Positions 12,405 to 49,780 of a DNA stretch of 64,000 nt are shown in pieces. Source of the stretch: Polymyxa betae A26-41 (lineage: Eukaryota; Protista; Endomyxa: Phytomyxea); assembly GCA_003693705.1 (NCBI GenBank), contig RBZT01000672.1, positions 1 through 64,000 on the forward strand, written 5' to 3'. The notes beneath the pieces were generated by a model, which was given only the letters and a program-made list of their open reading frames with translations, was not told the DNA's origin and did no database searches. The stretch's first letter is position 1; each line of letters opens with the position of its first letter. Position numbers and translations under genes: made by a program.

Positions 12405-13857
12405 ATGGCTTTAGAGGAGATTCGCCAGAAGTCTATTTTTAGGTCCGATCGCACTATTTCTGCAGTCGCTCTGAAATGTTCAAAAGAGAGGCAGCGCAGC
12501 GCAACGGCTCGCTTTCACCATGATTTCCGACTCGTCCAAGAGCGATGTCCTTATCATCTGTACTGGTGGCACGATCGGTATGTTTGAGAATGACGATGGT
12601 GCCTTAGAGCCGCGCCCAGGAGCGTTCACGGCTATGCTGCCTCATGTGTTCGCTTTCAATCAGTCGAGGCTGCCGAAGTATGATGTGATGGAGTGGGAAC
12701 CCTTGATTGATAGTTCCAATATGCGACCACAATTGTGGAAGGTTTCCGTCCTCTCTCGTATTCACTATCGAGGTGCCTGATTTTCCTGTCCAGTTGCTGA
12801 TTAAGCAAATTCGTGACAATTATGACCAGTACAGCGGATTCCTGATATTGATGGGAACCGACACCATGAGCTATACAGGTTGGTTTTGTATGATGATATT
12901 CGTGCTCGCCATATAATGTTGTCTTGACAGCGTCTTGTGTCTCCTTTGCATTCCAGAATCTCGCTAAACCAAGTATGTCGCTATTAACTTGCTATAATCG
13001 CCCCTTTCCAATCTATTGGCCACAGTAATCTTCACTGGATCTCAGATACCTGTCCATCGTGCGTATACCGATGCAAGAAGGCATCTAACTATAGGACTTC
13101 TTGCAGCTGGTAATCTCTGTATTCCAGAAGTCTGTATGTCGACCCATAATCAACATCATGCTGGTTTTCAGCTGTTTTGTTAGGCCTGCTATTCGGTGAG
13201 AAACTTTTCCGAGGGAATCGAACGAAAAAGAAGGATAATTGGGGTGCGTCTGCTTTTGAATCCCCGAATTGTGCTCCTCTTGCTACGTTCGGCGTCAATG
13301 TTCATCTTAGCGATCATATGCGAACCATGCCGAGGAATCCACTTCGCGTGTTCGACGAAATTTTTTCCAATATCATGGTGGTGTGGTTGGTCCCTGGATT
13401 TGACGATACGATGCTCTCGCGGTTGGCCCCAAAAGATGATGGCGAAGAAATCGGCATTGTATTGGTTTTATATGGTGCCGGCAACGCTCCTAGCCACTCG
13501 AATCGTTCATTTATCCAGGCTTTGGTTGATCTCAAAGCAAATCGGGCTGAAACTGTAGTAGCCTCACAATGTGAGTTTGCCTTATGCTTAGAAATCGGAT
13601 CTTAATCTTACATTTCGAGTTTAGGTAGGAAAGGCAGTATCAATTTGTCGTCATACGCTACTGGAAAGCAGATGTTGGATTTGGAGCTGATTAATGGTCG
13701 TGATATGACCATTGAGGCATGCGTCACAAAGCTATCGTTCCTGATGGGACGAGGTTTCCGTGGTCAGAAACTGAAAACATTAATGGAGACAGATCTTAGA
13801 GGCGAGCTGACTCCAAATTCTGGTCATGTACCGTATGGTGAAATGCGATGGGAATAA
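12405..13857 (+). CDS. L-asparaginase type I (no ankyrin tail)
   Basis: Catalytic motifs TGGTIGM, IDSSNM, GTDTM, TGSQIP, RGNR, YGAGN and DMTIEACVTKL across about 7 exons. Confidence 0.93.
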
Positions 13858-14024
13858 ATTCCTAACTGATTGTTTAATGGGCGGCTTAAGTCGACATATT
13901 TTTACAGTGCACAAGGAGGACAGCCATAGATTAAATGTATACTTGAAGAATTTGGGAATAACCTGGTTTTTTTGCTGCGATTGTTTCCTCATTAGCCCCA
14001 AACACACGCAACGCTGTTTTTATT

Positions 14025-17000
14025 CTAAATTTTATGCAATCTGCAGTAATTCCCATATTTGGATTTGTTCTTGCAACGCGTCCCATTTTTAGTTTGGCCT
14101 TGGCACCTACTATCTGTTTCATTGCGATCACATGGTACATTCGATTCAGGTCCGCTTTCCGAGATCTCGATGCCAACAGATTTCACTTCGGCGACCGTTT
14201 CAACTTGAATGTCATCAACATTCACTTGAACGGCCGATTCTACTTGAATATCATCAGATTTCACTTGAGCGGCCGTTTCAACAGATTTCACTTGAGCGAC
14301 CGTGTCGACTTGAATGTCATCAGATTTCACTTCATCAACTAGAACATCATCAGATTTCATTTGAGCAACCGTGTCGACTTGAATATCATCAGATTTCACT
14401 TGGGCGACAGTATCGAGTTGAATGTCGTCAGGAGCACATTTCTGGTCCACGTCCTCAACAAAATTGAGATCTACAAAGAGAATAGGTGCAAATAAACATG
14501 CGATATTTAATCAACGTACCGACGGCATTAGCCTGCAGTGCACTTAAATCAATAATAGAACCGTCAGCCTGGACGGCTACAGCATTCAGATTCGCATTGA
14601 TTGTCAAACCTTGAAAATCAACCTTGTCTGCAACCGTTTGTGAAGGCCCCCTAAAATCTTAATTTGAATCGAACGAAATTGCGAACCAATCCCAACTCAC
14701 CTCTCAGCATTGTTGCAAGGAAATCCGGTGCTTTTTAAACCACCAGGATTCAATTTAGGATATGTGATGTGATCAACAGGGGGCTCTGAGGGCAAAGAAC
14801 TCGCTGCAGTGCCGATGCAAGAGAAATCACATTTCGTGTCCTCTGCACGAGGTAAATTCAACAATGGATTCATATGGCGTAGTAGAAAAGAGTCTGCATA
14901 CCAATGTTGGAAATTACTTCCGGAAGTGAACATGGATCAGCAACTGGGACAGCAGTATCTTCAACAGCGATATCGTCGTGCACAGGTGCCTCACTGCCCA
15001 ACATTTAAACAACAGAGCACAGTGTAATCATCTCAACGCACATCTGTTCAAGCTTGCAAGAATATTCAGTGTGGACGCCTCCTTCTGCGTCATTCTCAGT
15101 ATGAGCTTCTTCTGGAATTTCGGTTGAAACTGTTGATCGGATATTAACTAGGAGTGCCAAAAACAGGAAAATTTCAAACCTGCATCGTTCAAATCAATTT
15201 CGTTCCTCGGGTCGGTTGCAGTAGCATCATCGCCATGATTCTGGTCCTCTGCATGAGACACATTTACAAACTGAGTCTTAACGAATGAGAAAGGCTATCA
15301 ACTCCGCTTACCAGCGTCCATAAGTGCATCAGAGCGGTCAATTAAATCAGCATCTGGGACATCGACAACATTGTCATTCTCTTTGCCCACAGAATTGTCA
15401 TTAGTAATGTCATTTTGATTTTTTTCATTTGCAATTTCGTTTCTACAGCTTGTTTCAAAATCCTACCAGCAGTCTAACCACTTCACAAACCTTTCTTCAT
15501 TGATGAAGGCAGATTCGGTATGGATGGTCTTGGATACGCCAAGGTCAGTGTGAATATGTTCTTTGATTGCAGTTATGCAGGTGTCAGGAGCTGTAAGTCA
15601 GATATCAATTAATGCCATCAAAGAAGACAATGTCCAACTTGTTGTAAGAACTCCAGGCTCGATAGGATCAGCAGACTCAACTATGTAGTTAGAGCTTGAT
15701 GCAATCTCGATATCCACACAATTCTGATCTTCCACATTATCTGGAACTAAAAAAGCTTAAAACAGCGTAAGCGAAAAACGATCAAAGTCAACATACCGGC
15801 AGCCACAGCTGCATCAGAATGGATAATCAAATCAGCAGCTGGAACAACGATATCATTGAAATCCTCATTGACCAAAATGTCTCCATCTTCAATTTTGTCG
15901 GCCATTGCAGTGAGCGTACTAGAATTATGGGTTAGAATTCAGGAAGAGTTGCAGAATTTCAGCATCACCGCTCATCATTCTCGCAAGGATGTCTATTGTG
16001 GATGATTTCTGTAGTGTTAAGCTCCATATGGGTCTCACATTGCATTTCAGTTCGATCTGTATCAGGTACTGAACAGACACCATTAGTCAGCATCGTTGAA
16101 CAATATTATCGCAAACCTGCTGAGTCCGTAACAGACTCGTTTGCTGAATCTTCGACACAATCCATCGGCTTGACCAAGGACACGGGATCTGCTGCATTAC
16201 TGTTATCCACAGATTGAGGGTCCTCAGTACCAGAAGCAACTAAACGATGAGTTTGGTGAATATACGAAATGGGACCAAAGCTACCAAAATCTGCATACCA
16301 GCAGGAAGAACCGGATCAGATTCAATGTTCGAATCCGTTTCAGCAACGACGGCGTCATTGACATTCCCATTGATCACAGTATCATCATTGTCCAACTTGT
16401 TGGCGACATCCGGAATCATCACACTACGATTTCAGTGAATACCAGAAAATTGACCAGTTCATGACACTCACATCTCATTATTGCAAGCAGATTCAGACTG
16501 GAGCACTTCGAAGGTGTTAAGCTCAGTGCCGGTCTCCTCTTGTACTTCAATTTCAGGCACTGTAGACCAACGATCAAATATGAGCGACAAACCAAAGAGG
16601 ATTTCAACCTGACGATTCAGATTGGTTGGCTGAAACTTCGACTTGATCAACGGGCGTGGATTTGCAGGTGGAATCCGTCGGTGCATGGACATCAACAAAC
16701 GGGTGATCGTTGGCATTGTTTAGCTCTAGAAATACGTTGATTACTGAAGGAAAAAGAAATGCGAAAATCTGCATACCAAGGTCCACAGCCGATCCAGAAT
16801 GAGTAGCTGAATCAGGAATGACAACGACAACATCGATCGCAGCCTCATTGACCACAGAATCTTCATTCTCAATCTTGTTAGCGGCACTTGTTATGGCCAA
16901 ACTACAGTCTGTAATTAAAGCGCCATGGGACCAGTTTAAGAATTTCAACTGACCTCTCTCCATTGCAAGATGCTTCAGTACGGATGATTTCTGTAGTTTG

Positions 17001-18590
17001 AATTTCAGCAGGAGAGCCTTCTTCTTGGATTTCTGTTAAGCATACGCCACTATTGGAGCCTAAAAGTCACACATGAACTCGCAGAGTTAAGAATTGCAAA
17101 CAAACAGAACCTTTAGACTGTTGCGTGAGCTCGGAAAGACGACTCGCGGCCGTTGAATTAGTTGAAGTAAAGTCCTGAAGAAGTTGTCGACGAGGCGTAT
17201 GCTGAAGTCTTCGCTTAAGCGACTTCCGCACGGACGTTGGCAGGCGATTTGGAGACAAAAGAACTCGAACATTGTGCTTCGAAGGAGTTCGAGGTGCTGC
17301 CGATTTCAAAGCGATAGGAGAACCGGTCTGGGCGGCGTCTTTATCATCCGGCTTCGAGACCGGCTCTTCATGAACAATCGGAGCAATTTCAACATCAAAT
17401 AGTTGAGATGGAATGATTTCTTCCAATTGGTCCTGGGACTCAGCGAGAACCTCTTCGTTAAGAAGGTTCTTTTTACGAATTGAAGGCGAGGCCTCCACTT
17501 TTAACGAGGTCCGCTTCATGGCAGCTCGAGCAGATGACCGGACAGAGAACAGCTTCTTGGTCTTCCCAATTACAGGTGACAGATAGCTTGGCGTTTTTTG
17601 CTCGTGAGCCTAAAACGTTTTGGAAAAGGTCGAATTACTCGTTTGTCATTCTACCTTCGGCGTGTCTGGGACGATGGGAGTGCTCTCAGCCGGCACAGCA
17701 CCATCCTGGGCAGCGCTTAGAACTTTGGATTGACGAAGCGACGACCGGGGCGTCCTCTTGGACATCTTCGGTGCCCGAGCAGACGAAGGGATATCGGATT
17801 TCCGTTTCTTCTTGGTTCCTGGAGTGAAACAGGAATTATTCTCATCGGGCTTGTCTTTTGCGATTGTTTCGACAGTTCGATCTGAAGGATTCTGATCGAT
17901 AGGCTGGTTTTCAATGTTTTCCAAATTCTCTATCCTGTTCTCGATCGCATCAGAAAGCTCCTTTGGATGCGATTCTTTGTCAAGACAGGGAATGTTATTG
18001 GATGCGAGAGATTGCTGCGATTGTGCAGTTAGATCTGTCAGTGCAGCTGGATTCAGCAAACGTTTTCTGATATTAGCAAGTGAGAAAGTTTCAGCAATTT
18101 CAGGGCCTGAAATGAACAGCTGTTTAGCATGCAGATTGCTGATAGGTGATCACATACAATATTCAAGTCTAAACCAATTGTTGCCGATAGTGAACACATT
18201 ATTATGTCCAACAAACGAATTGTCGTGGATCTCTTTCCCATTTAAGTAGGTTTTTGTGGATGCATTCAGGTTTTTTAACCAAATCAGACCGTCGTCGTCT
18301 ACCGTCAATAAAGCATGCCTGTCCGAAACGTTCGTTTTCTGAATGCGAACTTCGCAGCTTGTGTTTCTAGTAATCATTAAGGTTGTAACAATACAGATTC
18401 AGCGGGATTCGTACCTACCGAATGTCACTTTTCTCTTATTAATCACATATTTGAATCCTGCATCCAGAGCTCAGAACATGAAGGTCACTTGATGAGGAAA
18501 TCACTAACCATCAGTGCCCTCAGGCAATATGATATAGATAAGGCTGGCAAGAGTGGACAGATTAGCTTTGGATTCTTGGGCTTCCTTCAT
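14025..18590 (-). CDS. Large FHA-domain protein with repetitive disordered body and C-terminal CCCH finger (Ki-67-like architecture)
   Basis: N-terminal FHA (TFGRNTSCEVRIQKTNVSDRHA...TYLNG...FTIGNNWFRLE), then a basic S/T-P-rich region, many short acidic exons, 13-aa repeats and RCQGQTKNGTRCKNKSKYGNYCRLH. Continuity inferred from splice signals. Confidence 0.7.
14176..14430 (-). repeat. Coding minisatellite, ~39-bp unit (13 aa QVKSDDIQVDTVA), about 6 degenerate copies
   Basis: Repeated agatttcacttgagc...cttgaat.tcatc units visible directly. Confidence 0.92.
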
Positions 18591-18686
18591 TTGAATCGCC
18601 AATTTTCGGGGTAAAATCCAGGGCAGCGACCGTCGTCAAGATTGCAGCAGGTCAATCGGCAAATCGAACGAAGGATTTATCGAGGA

Positions 18687-18703: not shown

Positions 18704-18891
18704 TACAGCTTCACAGAGTTGAAAATATCACGATTCATCTCTGTAAAATAAAGAGCCCTTGAGGCACCGCGAGCTATTTAACCAGCGTACAGTTTGTGTG
18801 GCGTTGGATAAACTCCAAATTCACTGAGCTTTCTAAGAAATCCTATCTTTTATATGAAAGTAAAGCATTGTTAAAACATTCGCTGTAGGTT

Positions 18892-20023
18892 TTAGCTGGA
18901 CTCAGAAAAACGCTCGTTCGAGACTTTGGATTGCTTGATCTCACGGTCTAGATACCTGTGAAATTGCTGAATTATATCCTGCTTCCTAAACAAGCATACA
19001 AAATTGTTACATTTTCGGCAACATATCAAATGGGGACCATTGCCGTTTCAGTTTCTCGACATCGTCGGCCGTTTGGTATTTTCCAGAGTCGTGATAAGAG
19101 CGACATTTCAAAGTGCCGATTGTGTCGAAGAACACAATTTGGGCAATTCTTCGCCCAACCACCAGTGGGATTGAATAGTTCCTAGAATTGTTGGTGATCT
19201 CCATCGTCCATCTATTTACATATCCAATATCGCCCCAACCTATATACCGTCATTACTTGAAGCGAAGCAAAAACAAGCGGTAAGAATAACATACCAGCAC
19301 ATTTGCAAACTTCAATGAAGTTTCTTCCCATACTGCTTCGGGCCTTCATCATGGTCGTTACCGAACCACGTCCTCCAATAAACTCTATCCGAGGTTAAAC
19401 ATCAGCAACTTTAACTAAGATGCGATTTACCATTGGTATGGCCCAGAATTGTTTCTCCAGGACGAATCCAGATGATCTGGTCATCGGGGGAGATGTTCTC
19501 TAATTGCATACCTGTTCGTCGCATCCAAAGCCCTAACATATTAAAAGCATAAGTGTGAAATCCGGCGACTGCCAGAACGTACCAGCTGCTTCAGCAGTTT
19601 GAAGCTGTTGAGCGCTCCAAACTCGGTCTACCATAGATTTGCTGTTTTACGATTAGAGATTGTCATTTCAGAAATCGATGCATTCGACCTATAGGGATTA
19701 TAAATACCATCGCCTGGCTCTGGCACCGCCTCTCTGAAATAATATTGTCCTATTACATTAATAAGGTAGGCGCTCAATAACTACAATCGTTCTAACCCAG
19801 TGTGACATCATAAGAGCTAGTCGATAGATTTTCCATAACGAAGGGCTCAATTACTACAGTGCCGGCATCCATATTGCTCAGAATCGCCTTTTTCGCAGCA
19901 ATGAGCAATGGAGCGCTCACAGAGCGGGATAATTACAGCATCAGAAAGCAGCGATTTGGCAATGATTTGTGGTTCCTGCTGACAGCCCTCTGGCTCTTGC
20001 TGCCTCTGAGATTCGTCATCCAT
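18892..20023 (-). CDS. dcd: dCTP deaminase (trimeric dUTPase superfamily)
   Basis: Spliced: LLSD, SYDVTL, IRPGETILGHT.EFIG, KARSSMGR, AGWGDIGY..RWTMEI, RIAQIVF, GKYQ. Confidence 0.88.
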
Positions 20024-20441
20024 GATTGTCAATAAGAGAATGATTGTGAGCGCAACCTCTCCATCCGTGAACCCTCTTCTCCTCCTTCAAATCAATCTGC
20101 CTTTTTCAAGTGATATCATCGCTCGCTTGCAAGTACTATCAAACTGTACTTGTGCTCTGCTTCGTGAAGACCTGTGGATGTTTTCTGCCTCGTGAAGATT
20201 GCATATCTTGGATTTTATTGCAATATGCGCTCAGCAACGACATGAATGTCGGCCGATATTGAATCATGAATTCATAGAATAATGCTCGTCAGAAAGGTAT
20301 TACACGATAACTACCCAATCCGAAACAAAGTAGTGATGCCGGAGTCGGTCATAAGGAGACGATATGTTCAAATTCAAATAGCGTGCGACAACATTCAACT
20401 TTATTTCATTAGTTAAATCGTCGTGCTCAATTCTCAATATA

Positions 20442-21279
20442 ATGGCTGAGAAACCATCGCTTCCATCATCTTATCATCTGCCTGAAGTATGGTCGGAACC
20501 TGAGCAGAAACAGTTCACTATGTTTGGAAACAGTCCAACAGCTGGACCTCGACAGCAGTTAGACCTGCCTCGAGGGCATCATCCATTGCAGCTGTATTCG
20601 TTAGGCACTCCAAACGGCCAGAAAATCACTATTTGTAAGAATCGCTATAGAAATTGGTATTCGCTAACTTCTCGAAGTGCTGGAAGAACTCGGCCTATCA
20701 TTTGATGCCTGGAAAGTCGATATAAGGGCCGGCGATCAGTTCACTTCTGGATTCTGCAATGTCAATCCCAATAGTAAAATTCCAGCCATGATGGATTATT
20801 CGCAATCGCCGCCATTGCGAATCTTCGAATCCGGCTCGATTCTGCTCTATCTGGCTGAGAACAACAAGAAGCTGATTCCGACCGATCCTGCCAAGCGTGT
20901 CGAATGCATGAACTGGCTGTTCTGGCAGATGGGTACTGCCCCATTTCTCGGTGGCGGATTTGGACATTTCTACCATTACGCCCCAATTCGTATCGAATAT
21001 GCCATCAATCGATTCGCTATGGAAACCAAGCGTATCATCAGCGTTCTCGATATGCATCTCAATGGCAAAGAGTATGTCTGTGGTGATGAATATTCCATTG
21101 CTGATATCGCGATCTATCCCTGGATTAAATGTTTGCAGACGGGATATAACGCGACTAAGTTCTTAGGTCTAGACGAGTATAAAAACGTCAACCGATGGGC
21201 CGAGAAACTGACAAAGCGAGACGCCGTCCAGCGCGGAATGAACTTCCAATACGAACGCTCGATTAAAGATAAGGCTTAA
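20442..21279 (+). CDS. Glutathione S-transferase, Nu class (YghU/YfcG-type disulfide reductase)
   Basis: N-extension with PTAG...LPRGHHPLQLYSLGTPNGQK, then NPNSKIP, FESGSIL, WLFWQMG, GGGFGHFY; one intron. Confidence 0.93.
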
Positions 21280-44985: not shown

Positions 44986-46439
44986 TTATTGTTTTCGATG
45001 ATTTTTGGGTTTTACTTTCAATGTTAAAGAATGTTTCGATATGGCGCTAGAATTGTTTTCAAGTCGCCAATCAAACTTTCGAATCATTTCGTTTAGTACA
45101 AGCTTTACGAAAAGCCTACCCAGTTCAGCGCCAACGCAATCACGTGGTCCAGCACCGAAAGATGCAACTTCCAGATTCCTGGGCGCGTTCTCTTTTGAGT
45201 GCCAACGTTCTAGCGAGAAGTTGTCGTCATGCTGCGAAAACATCGTGGACATTGCGTCTAATCCAACGAAGACCTGCCATTCTGAAACATATGAATTGCT
45301 CTATTTCCAGCTGTCGTGATTCATACTTGCGGGAACTTCAATTTTAGTCGACGTAGAAAACGGAATCTTGACTACACGGCCGCTAATGGGGACAGTTGGA
45401 AACAAACGCATCGACTCCTTGACGGCTGCATTCAGCATTTGCTGCTGTTGGAGGACAGAATAGTCGGTTTCGCTGAAATCCTTTAGAAATGTTAATTCTT
45501 TAGCATCATTAGCCAACAACAGCAAACCTCCTGTTCTTCTCGTAGTTGGCTGACTATATCAGGACGTTTAGCTAACGTGTGAGCAGCAATACATATCGTG
45601 AACGATGTTGTTTCAAAACCGGCAAGATTTGCCAAAATGGTCTGCGATATGATTTGATCGTCGCTTAAGTTCCCATCGTTTAAGAATACTGACAATAAGC
45701 CTTCACCATGACCGCTTCTTCGTCGCTTTTGTATCTCATTATCAACGATCAGACGAAGTTGATCGCGTGCTTTTAGGGCTTTTCCAAAACTCGTCCAAGG
45801 GATGTCCAGTGGTAGAGAGAGCATCCCTTTGTTGAATGTCATAAAGAGCGAATATATTTCTTGTCGAAAAGTCTCGTTGTATTCTCCAAAGACGGCGAAT
45901 TGGCTTAATGTAAATACAATTTGCCGTATACGAGAGGCGACTTCGATTCCTGTATGGTAAGGCCAAGTCTCTAATTCCGCCCGAATCAACGGAATAGCGA
46001 TCTTGGTAATATTCTTTAGTGCTTCCGGTTTTGTCAGAAAATAAAATAATCGTCTATGCGCCTTGTGGACTTCACCATGTTGCGTCAATAAAGACCCTTC
46101 CATCAGTTTATGGACTGGCTGAATCAATTGCATGTCAACGATCTTTCCTTCCCCAAGAAGAACAAGTTTAACATCCGATACGCTACTCAAAAAGATGGTA
46201 GGATATCCGAACAGATGCGTTCGAAATGTAGGTCCAAATCTAGCATGCCGCTGGCGAATGAACCCGCGGATGTCCATCACGAACTGTAATGTTTCGCCAA
46301 TGAACGGCCAGCCAGCGCTGCCTGGTGCCTGACATTGCAATCTCCAGTACCATTTCCATATGACATGGACTATGATGGCAGAAGCAACGATAAGCATCAA
46401 CATGGTGCAGACAGCAGTAAACGAAACGTTAGGCGTCAA
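44986..46439 (-). CDS. Cytochrome P450 (CYP26/CYP120/plant CYP85-clan-like); exact start uncertain
   Basis: TM anchor, PGSAGWPFIGETLQF, FRTHLFG.PT, I-helix AGFETT, ExxR (KESMR), heme motif FGAGPRDCVG. Confidence 0.93.
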
Positions 46440-47089
46440 CGCATCCCAAGTTCCAAACCCTAATGAGGGAGTGTTCAGTCACAAACGATGTAGGTAGGTA
46501 TCGTCATTTTTGTTAAAGTGATAACAGTGACTATCAAAGAGAGCGTATACGCGCGCATCAGGATTACTGCTGTGCTCAGTGCAAATACAACTACCGTGTA
46601 TAGCGAAGAATCAACCGCGTCGGGCGTATCCATTATGATATGTACACATGTAGCACGGGGTTTTGTAACGTAATACATTTTCGATCAACAATGGATGCTG
46701 CAACGCTACTTGGGGGCCATGAGACCCTTGCAGACATTGGGTTCTATGTGGTAGGGTTTATCGTACCTTATCAGTGGCCGCAACTGCTTTCAGAGCTTCT
46801 AGATAATCTCTATCTCTTTTAAGAAACAGTCAAATCGCGCATTCAAGATTTGTTTGTGTGCTGTGTGTTGTACGCTTCCGAATCTCACGAATACTGGAAT
46901 AGCATAGACCAAGTATGCACTTTACTTCTGAAATGGCTTGGTGGCGCGAAAGTGGCTACTTTGAGTCGTGAATGAATACCCCTAACACTGTCAAATATAA
47001 AACAGGCAAATGATAGATGATGCGACAAATGATACAGAGATATGCTGAAGCTATTTATCCATATTTTTAAAGTAGCAAGTTGCCTGACA

Positions 47090-48733
47090 CTAGAAGCATT
47101 TTCCTTGAATCGAAACCCCATTTGGAATGTATGGAGTCTCGACACCTGTTTTCACGTGCTTCATTCGAAATTCGAGCAGCGGTGACAAACCCTCAATCGT
47201 CGTTCTATTAGCTTGGTAGCCTAGCTTCTCATACGCCCTCGATATATCCACATTTCGATTCATGACATATGCGGTCATTGGCGAAGATCCCATTGCAATC
47301 ATTCCTGTGCTTGCAACGATTCTGCCATTCAGGCAAGTTAACAGTGTATATGGCTCTGGTGTTGAAGACACTTGCTTGATAGTGATCATAACATGGTCCT
47401 GGGTGAGGGCTGCTCCTATCTCTCCCACATTGAAAGGAGACTCTACATGTTGTATGGGCTTGGGAGGATCCACCTGCGGTGGGAGCGTCGCCACAGATGC
47501 TGGCGATGGTGGTGGCGTCGGTAAAGGAGCGGGAGCCGGGACCGGTGCAGGAATTTCAGTAGCCGGTGGTGCAGACGGTATTGGTATCTCTATCGCGTTC
47601 GTCACGGTATGATGCATGGGGTGCTCAGACGCTGGTGATAGCCCAATGACAAGATGAGCAGCTGCTTGCGACGGCGAAGTCGCCGAGTTCCGTTTCGATG
47701 GTATTCGTGCGATAATTGGATCCGACTCAGATGGGAGCGAGTACAAACCGGTATCTTCAAGAACCTTGAACTTTGAGGAGCCTTTTCGCTTGGCTACTGC
47801 AGCTTTCAAAGTTTTCTTCCATCGGCGGATTTCGTCAGGAGGGGTGCCTTGCATCCAGCCATCAAAATAGGTGAGGAGATCAGAAGCCGCGATCGAATAA
47901 GAGTTCAGCTCGATTGGCATTTCAACCACGTCCTCTGGGTAGACGTAATTGTCATGCACCAGCTGCCATTGGAAAAACAGTCGTTCTGTGTTCATATGTA
48001 GACTCCAGAACATCTGTGAAACATCTTATCATCGTCTCATTAAGACATATTGAGGTCTCTTACCGGATCGAACGCAGCTACATCGATATAAGCTAATACA
48101 CCTCCCAAAGTGGTATGTGCAAAATTGTGGCAATCTTCCAGCGCAGCAGTGAAATTTTTGAAATCATCCACAGCGAATGAGGCGTAATCTTCTTTCTCAG
48201 CGACCTGGACATGAGGGTATGGCATGGATGGAGTTCGTAGCGTAGTTGGCCCAGGATTATCGATCGTTCGAACATTCTCAGGTAGGAACACCGAATGTAA
48301 TGGATTCAGAAGCATCGTTCCATTTCGACCTTTATAGAGATCATCTGAAAATGCTGCAGGAATGGTTGGCTTTCGCCAATCCCAGTAGGGAATGGGGCAG
48401 CCAATAACCATTTCCATCACACTCACCTGAGATGTTCGAGATTAGAGTGTTTTGACTGACTACAGACGATTCACTCACATAGAACCGATGCCATAACAAG
48501 AAGGCGGGTGTGCCATGAACACAATAACCATTCGACTCTGGGTTCGACATGAGTGGCATTCCATGCCATCCGGCCACAGCATAGAACGAGCCATTATCTA
48601 GTGCTGCTTGAACGAGCTCGCGGTAAGATAGCAGTTCTTCTGGCGTTAATGATTCGATGCTCTTCCGTCTTGTTGGCGGTCCTGCTAGGCAGATACCACA
48701 GGTCAGGGCTACAATAAACCAGGATATCAGCAT
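47090..48733 (-). CDS. Secreted tyrosinase (type-3 copper) with Pro-rich linker and C-terminal domain
   Basis: Signal peptide; CuA HGMP..CVHG..FLLWHR; PYWDW; CuB HNFAH...AAFDP-MFWSLH; 3 exons. Confidence 0.93.
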
Positions 48734-48849: not shown

Positions 48850-49780
48850 TCAACATTCCGAGTGACGTCTGCGAAATTGGTATATAAACGCTGTATTAAG
48901 AGTTTCCAATAAGTGACGATTGATGAGTAATGACCGTAGACAGAGCAAAGAGACAAGATTGTAGATCTTAGAACTCAAAGTATCATTATCAACTTCTTTA
49001 ATATTCTGAGCGAGCAAACAGTTCAAATAAGCAGAATTCTTTGAATTTTTTTTATGTTTTTTTGAATGCTTATGATGAATGGGTCTAAATCTGAAACTTT
49101 GGCAGGCAAACGACTGAAACATCAAACGTCTACCCCAATAAATAGTTCAAAACAATTGTTGAAATGTTGGGGAGACAGAGACAAAATCTGTTTCAATACA
49201 CTTGATTTCCCGCATTGATATGTGAATGGAGGATGGATGCGGTCCATCATTGCTTGATGATATCTCGCTGAACGTGAGTGATTCCGATGAATTGACAGAA
49301 ACTGGTTGATGGTCTTGTCTTTGTCTGGGCCGGTACGAACCACAGATCCCGTCATACCGTCCCTTGAATCTCCATGGTTCTTCGTTCTTCTTTGTTCCTT
49401 GGCATGTATCGTCTTATCGTTCGCATGGAGTGTGTTGCCAGCAGAAGTCAGTTTCTTGTTCTCTCTGCATCTTGTTACTTTTGGCAGTGACGTCTAAACA
49501 ACGTTTTTCACTGGGTTCTAAACTCGGGATTATCAACGACGACATCACCATCAAGGTCAGCGTCATCCACAATGAAAAAAAATCTGAAACAACAGAAACA
49601 TAGTCATCGTCATCAGAATACTCAACAATCAAAGAACATCTGATAATTGAATAGGAATTATTGAATAGGAATAAAAAATAAAATTATTGGCAATCAAATT
49701 TTTAATGAACTCAGTAAACTAAAATTAAAACTTGAAGAGTTATTTATCATGTTAAGAAAGTTGAATTAAGGCGTTAGTTC
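48850..49780 (-). pseudogene. Decayed ORF fragments with AT-rich flank, possible transposon relic
   Basis: Successive minus-strand ORF pieces in shifting frames without clear splice signals; 49620-49780 is strongly AT-rich. Confidence 0.25.

Follow-up and report, generated by a model that had tools for sequence, protein, structure and literature searches.

The window, a 64,000-nucleotide stretch of DNA from the beet-root parasite Polymyxa betae, a plasmodiophorid (Phytomyxea, Rhizaria), carries one expressed minus-strand gene whose 1165-residue product very probably belongs to the Ki-67 family by homology. The reading that we favour, and hold to be probable, is that the product is a short acidic Ki-67 orthologue, the only one in P. 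betae, acting as a two-ended tether between nucleolus and chromatin. The features of the gene, all on the minus strand, are as follows.

13992..18676: whole transcript, from the 5' end of the longest contig to the poly(A) site
18590-14025: coding sequence (ATG at 18590, stop at 14025; 22 exons, 1165 aa)
18158..18551: FHA domain, very probably of the Ki-67 family (aa ~14-111, exons 1-3; Pfam, PDB, reciprocal matches, profile, tree)
18367..18414: phase-2 intron (intron 2) splitting the Arg codon of the FG-R motif, at the same position and phase in relatives
17111..17825: basic patch (aa 206-428; net +20, pI 10.5), with a KKKRK NLS-like motif and most of the S/T-P sites
14520..17059: acidic spacer (aa 429-1017; net -102), five three-exon modules plus a partial sixth
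14195..14431: acidic minisatellite of 39 bp (13 aa) in the last exon, six DDIQVxT-like units
14028..14105: basic C-x9-C-x9-C-x2-H finger (aa 1140-1163), DUF5763 by Pfam profile match
13992..14024: 3' UTR of 33 nt, with AATAAA directly after the stop codon

Public sequencing runs confirm that the locus is a single expressed gene. About 60% of the locus words are present in five runs, a pattern expected for spliced RNA. In each of four runs, from two studies, one spliced contig of ~3.6 kb crosses the locus; the introns missing from it have CT..AC ends. The contig from run X1 is 3608 nt long, exactly the length predicted by the 22-exon model, and that from run X3 carries a poly(A) tail at 13992, just past the AATAAA. 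All 21 introns are of the GT-AG type, each 45-63 nt, and their removal leaves one uninterrupted frame. Among the splice joints listed, 14 of 15 fall in this gene, and its remaining exon borders were derived from contig offsets. The transcript evidence consists of assembled contigs rather than single molecules, from runs that carry no RNA label; they were taken as RNA because both splicing and polyadenylation are seen. A split of the locus into two genes is rejected on the single spliced contig per run, and nothing in the contigs speaks against one transcript. Searches were run exon by exon, and the joined model was kept for the scripts on frame, length, composition, motifs and repeat self-similarity.

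The neighbourhood contains several further genes. An expressed, intron-containing asparaginase gene (window 12520-13877, plus strand) lies tail to tail with the Ki-67-like gene, the two poly(A) sites being ~115 bp apart. Directly upstream on the same strand is an expressed, spliced dUTPase/dCTP-deaminase-like gene (window 18890-20030, minus strand; weak Pfam dUTPase match), followed by a glutathione S-transferase gene (window 20442-21279, plus strand; Pfam GST_N and GST_C). Putative cytochrome P450 and tyrosinase ORFs, judged by eye, lie at window 44986-48733 (minus strand).

The original prediction was of an N-terminal FHA domain resembling that of Ki-67 by either homology or convergence. Exon 3 matches Pfam PF00498 (FHA) at E 3e-9, and in a PDB search with this exon human Ki-67 was the sole match at E<=0.01. 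A Styela 'Ki-67-like' protein and a mollusc protein bearing PP1_bind are among the single-FHA matches of highest identity in a set of 1.84 billion representatives. A profile built from exon 3 and three environmental relatives, excluding animal-labelled sequences, ranked human Ki-67 first (E 4.8e-13), with 3.7e-6 for the FHA in second place; an earlier profile containing animal Ki-67s was set aside as circular and replaced by this one. In the reciprocal direction, the P. betae genome has at least 11 FHA loci, and of these the gene is the best match for both the mollusc (E 4.8e-14) and the Styela (E 4.3e-11) Ki-67 FHA. From an exon-3 alignment of 70 columns, whose Ki-67 rows had been picked for resemblance to the query and which contained no animal MDC1 or TCF19, IQ-TREE gathered 19 Ki-67-like rows in a single branch (97/93) that excluded 10 paralogues and 24 other FHAs; there was no robust grouping with another family. 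The phosphothreonine-binding G-R, S and H are retained, as is the strand CEVRIQ, which matches CDIRIQ of Ki-67; the Asn of the S-T-N loop is replaced by Thr.

Independent evidence of ancestry, separate from any sequence score, comes from the intron that interrupts FG-R. The same position and phase are found in the mollusc Ki-67 gene, in Styela (tunicate) Ki-67 and in the environmental genes L001, L002 and L021; among animals the comparison covered mollusc and tunicate genes. The motif is uninterrupted in all eight scorable FHA paralogues of the P. betae genome (two more were unscorable), and one relative, P0126, is intronless within its contig. Because reciprocal best hits, tree and common intron all agree, the FHA is read as homologous rather than convergent, and a chance resemblance to Ki-67 is rejected. 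An intron held in common with animal Ki-67 genes is also evidence that Ki-67 predates the split between animals and SAR.

The nearest relatives (L001, L002, L027) are FHA fragments on contigs of 0.8-2.9 kb whose C-termini fall outside the contigs, and their identity as phytomyxids is a guess. Homologue searches and metagenome scans yielded no full-length orthologue from Plasmodiophora or Spongospora, at most short fragments, a blank that carries no weight given the word and length limits of those searches. One of them carries an RLSFGP motif ~70 aa past its FHA (L002:560-600), similar to the PP1 motif of Ki-67 and not found in the Polymyxa protein. On a metagenome contig, a Ki-67-like gene encoding 2041 aa (L021:1288-10126) stands head to head with a Rad21/Rec8 cohesin gene. 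A fish-like Ki-67 (P0076) has two FHA-bearing N-terminal segments, at aa 1 and aa 1020, probably through tandem duplication or a fused gene model.

The basic region with CDK-like sites that had been noted behind the FHA is present, with TPK at aa 260, TPSK at aa 370, SPNR at aa 381 and TPRR at aa 400. Twelve of the protein's 14 S/T-P sites lie within aa 200-450, and three of the 14 have the full CDK consensus; published Ki-67 proteins have from 8 to over 200 S/T-P sites, a range that includes this count (bioRxiv 10.64898/2026.06.18.733134). The patch at aa 206-428 may correspond to the CP domain of Ki-67. No PP1-binding RVxF motif was found after the FHA and there is no PF15276 match; regular-expression matches occur only in the FHA and at aa 983, within the acidic body. 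The PP1 motif is also missing from several published non-vertebrate Ki-67s (bioRxiv 10.64898/2026.06.18.733134). By composition count, 67% of the post-FHA residues are disorder-promoting and ~2% are aromatic. The R/K ratio of the protein is low (39/63).

The body is acidic rather than basic, as originally described: aa 429-1135 have a net charge of -124, and the whole protein has a pI of 4.45 and a net charge of -103. The accompanying description of a repetitive, low-complexity body stands as to repetition and falls as to simple low complexity, since the body consists of five three-exon modules followed by the 39-bp minisatellite. Each module spans ~100-115 aa with intron phases 1-2-1, and exons 6-20 make up five degenerate copies. 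Equivalent exons and introns of the modules are ~60% identical, against 50-56% in shuffles, and local alignments that include the intron flanks give exon-pair z values of up to ~20-28 against shuffles. The exons and introns of the modules were duplicated together. Six repeat exons of the spacer returned no Pfam match. Since the repeats of vertebrate Ki-67 sit in a single exon (PMC8354752) and those of Polymyxa have no Pfam match, the latter most likely arose separately.

The small terminal CCCH domain was likewise recovered. The last 35 aa score 27.1 bits against DUF5763 (PF19067), marginally above the gathering cut-off of 26.3; the finger scores 26.3 in the genome scan and 23.3 with the whole last exon. 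The last 33 aa have a pI of 9.9. Weak matches to the MCM10 zf-primase (PF09329) and HGGxSTG models both fall below cut-off, and the nearest PDB match is the finger of MCM10 (E 1.3, weak). A single-sequence fold (pTM 0.33) gave no structural match. The fingers of DUF5763, WRC, MCM10 zf-primase and HGGxSTG resemble the Polymyxa finger in their C-x9-C-x9/10-C-x2-H spacing and basic turn. WRC is the only one of these with demonstrated DNA binding: its C-x9-C-x10-C-x2-H finger binds zinc and DNA (10.1101/2025.01.03.631214). The likeness to WRC is one of motif spacing, an analogy: Pfam gave no WRC match, and the Polymyxa finger has T-R-C in place of W-R-C and a second spacing of x9. A literature search for the term DUF5763 found it in no paper, and the family is without known function.

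What places human Ki-67 at the border between chromatin and nucleolus is a pair of regions that the repeats must keep apart: the basic CP patch and, at the C-terminus, the LR domain, which binds DNA (PMC13144362). The same order of basic patch, spacer and basic end in the Polymyxa protein is the reason for proposing the same tether. RNA and nucleolar phosphoproteins would be bound by the FHA and basic patch; the polyanionic body of ~700 aa would form an extended spacer or brush; and the terminal CCCH finger would take over from the vertebrate LR domain in binding DNA or chromatin. The protein would be nuclear and amphiphilic, both linking nucleolar material to chromatin and spacing the two apart. 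CDK phosphorylation of the ~12 sites in the basic patch may cancel its +20 charge in mitosis, and dephosphorylation at mitotic exit may restore RNA binding. Cell-cycle control is assigned to the patch because the spacer is negative without phosphorylation and has only two S/T-P sites. With CDK sites clustered in the patch of a protein that is always negative, the switch would act on RNA binding and not on spacer charge. Human Ki-67, for its part, shifts from +113 to -67 upon CDK phosphorylation (bioRxiv 10.64898/2026.06.18.733134).

The tether is weakened by the absence of a PP1 motif after the FHA and by the failure of Pfam and motif searches to identify a NIFK gene in the P. betae genome, a partner that had been proposed as a check. 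It is further weakened by the behaviour of the acidic Drosophila Ki-67, which in human cells stays out of nucleoli; that protein still reorganises chromatin and retains a basic C-terminus (bioRxiv 10.64898/2026.06.18.733134). The main alternative is a true Ki-67 orthologue that works on chromatin only, in the manner of Drosophila, as a heterochromatin organiser or a histone-shielding polyanion outside the nucleolus. The pI of 4.45, close to the 4.54 of the Drosophila protein, the missing NIFK and the Thr in the FHA loop all suit this alternative. A distinct basic, S/T-P-rich patch lies where the nucleolus-binding CP domain is expected, however, and the CEVRIQ strand has been kept; we regard a chromatin-only role as unlikely.

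The origin of the finger bears on a further alternative, in which the protein is again a Ki-67 orthologue, the finger is a recent mobile-element pick-up of minor or no function, the basic patch binds chromatin and the acidic body is a neutral repeat expansion. Elsewhere in the genome, DUF5763 matches occur only in a decayed dispersed repeat, intergenic and AT-rich, with three copies.

48970-49660 of the window: first copy
G000:C239:200-1315: second copy
G000:C648:49630-50730: third copy

The copies are 64-70% identical in DNA, and each contains two tandem DUF5763-like CCCH fingers with stops or frameshifts. The repeat may be what is left of a transposon or a virus. Between its best finger and the one in this gene, identity is 41% over 29 aa. 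Most DUF5763-like Atlas clusters are viral, with scores under 0.9, and in five full-length relatives the last 60 aa lack Cys. It is possible that the finger was captured from a mobile family. Against a functionless pick-up stands the preservation of the finger: it keeps all four ligands and its basic residues, and it sits at the very C-terminus of an expressed frame, whereas the repeat copies are decayed. No DNA-level similarity was found between those copies and the finger. Derivation at the DNA level from the extant copies is rejected on this ground, and the pick-up alternative as a whole appears improbable. Convergence on Ki-67 by another FHA scaffold, either an MDC1-like DNA-damage mediator or a protein with a kinesin-type FHA, is largely refuted and very improbable: the MDC1 layout is likewise FHA plus long repeats, and Foldseek with the exon-3 model puts kinesin-3 FHAs on a par with Ki-67, but a fold search does not distinguish FHA families, Ki-67 leads even there in identity and TM-scores, sequence, reciprocal matches, tree and intron all favour Ki-67, and the protein has only five S/T-Q sites and no BRCT match.

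Cruciform division is the defining mitosis of plasmodiophorids. The nucleolus persists through it, elongated at right angles to the metaphase chromatin (PMC4815078). Ki-67 shapes nucleoli by anchoring chromatin (PMC13144362), and the two observations make the gene a named candidate for this peculiarity. A role for Ki-67 here is speculative. In its most specific form, a finger from a mobile-element or viral family would have replaced a disordered, chromatin-binding tail, and Ki-67 would hold the chromatin ring around the elongating nucleolus, a scenario that we consider improbable. Irrespective of such a role, the gene gives Ki-67 a full-length rhizarian member whose transcript is verified; Hondaea, the sole published SAR member, was flagged as possibly incomplete (bioRxiv 10.64898/2026.06.18.733134). 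The layout offers a natural test of the amphiphile model, with a spacer of opposite charge and an anchor that would be small, folded and cleanly deletable, and the protein could serve as a proliferation marker in root parasites.

Comparison with known systems changes two parts of the original prediction, which took Ki-67 to be mainly a vertebrate protein and the locus to be an undescribed system. Homologues have been identified in invertebrates, fungi, Thecamonas, the amoebozoan Dictyostelium and the stramenopile Hondaea, and a protist Ki-67 with an acidic body and a near-identical profile is already published (bioRxiv 10.64898/2026.06.18.733134, June 2026). Table 1 of that preprint lists Dictyostelium Q54WT0 (1032 aa, pI 4.36), Hondaea A0A2R5GIG2 (1139 aa, pI 4.24), C. 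elegans Q9N3H4 (1115 aa, pI 4.47) and Drosophila B7Z0I8 (pI 4.54), with Daphnia A0A162DAV5 acidic too. As in Polymyxa, these acidic proteins have an N-terminal Ki-67 FHA, a length of ~1030-1165 aa (except Drosophila), a pI of 4.2-4.7 and few S/T-P sites, and the PP1 motif is absent in Dictyostelium and C. elegans. Net charge per residue is -0.088 in both Polymyxa and Dictyostelium and -0.098 in Hondaea.

Vertebrate MKI67 shares with the Polymyxa protein the FHA family and the order of FHA, CDK-site basic patch, long repeats and basic C-terminal end. The Polymyxa protein differs in being one third as long, acidic instead of basic and without an RVxF PP1 motif. Its repeats bear no relation to the Ki-67 repeat and occupy 16 exons, against one exon in vertebrates (PMC8354752), and it ends in a CCCH finger where MKI67 ends in the LR domain. 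The preprint covers no Rhizaria and says nothing of a zinc finger, and the literature search found no rhizarian Ki-67 record and no paper linking Ki-67 with Plasmodiophora. What Polymyxa adds to the known family is a rhizarian member, the intron evidence, repeats built of three-exon modules, and the terminal finger.
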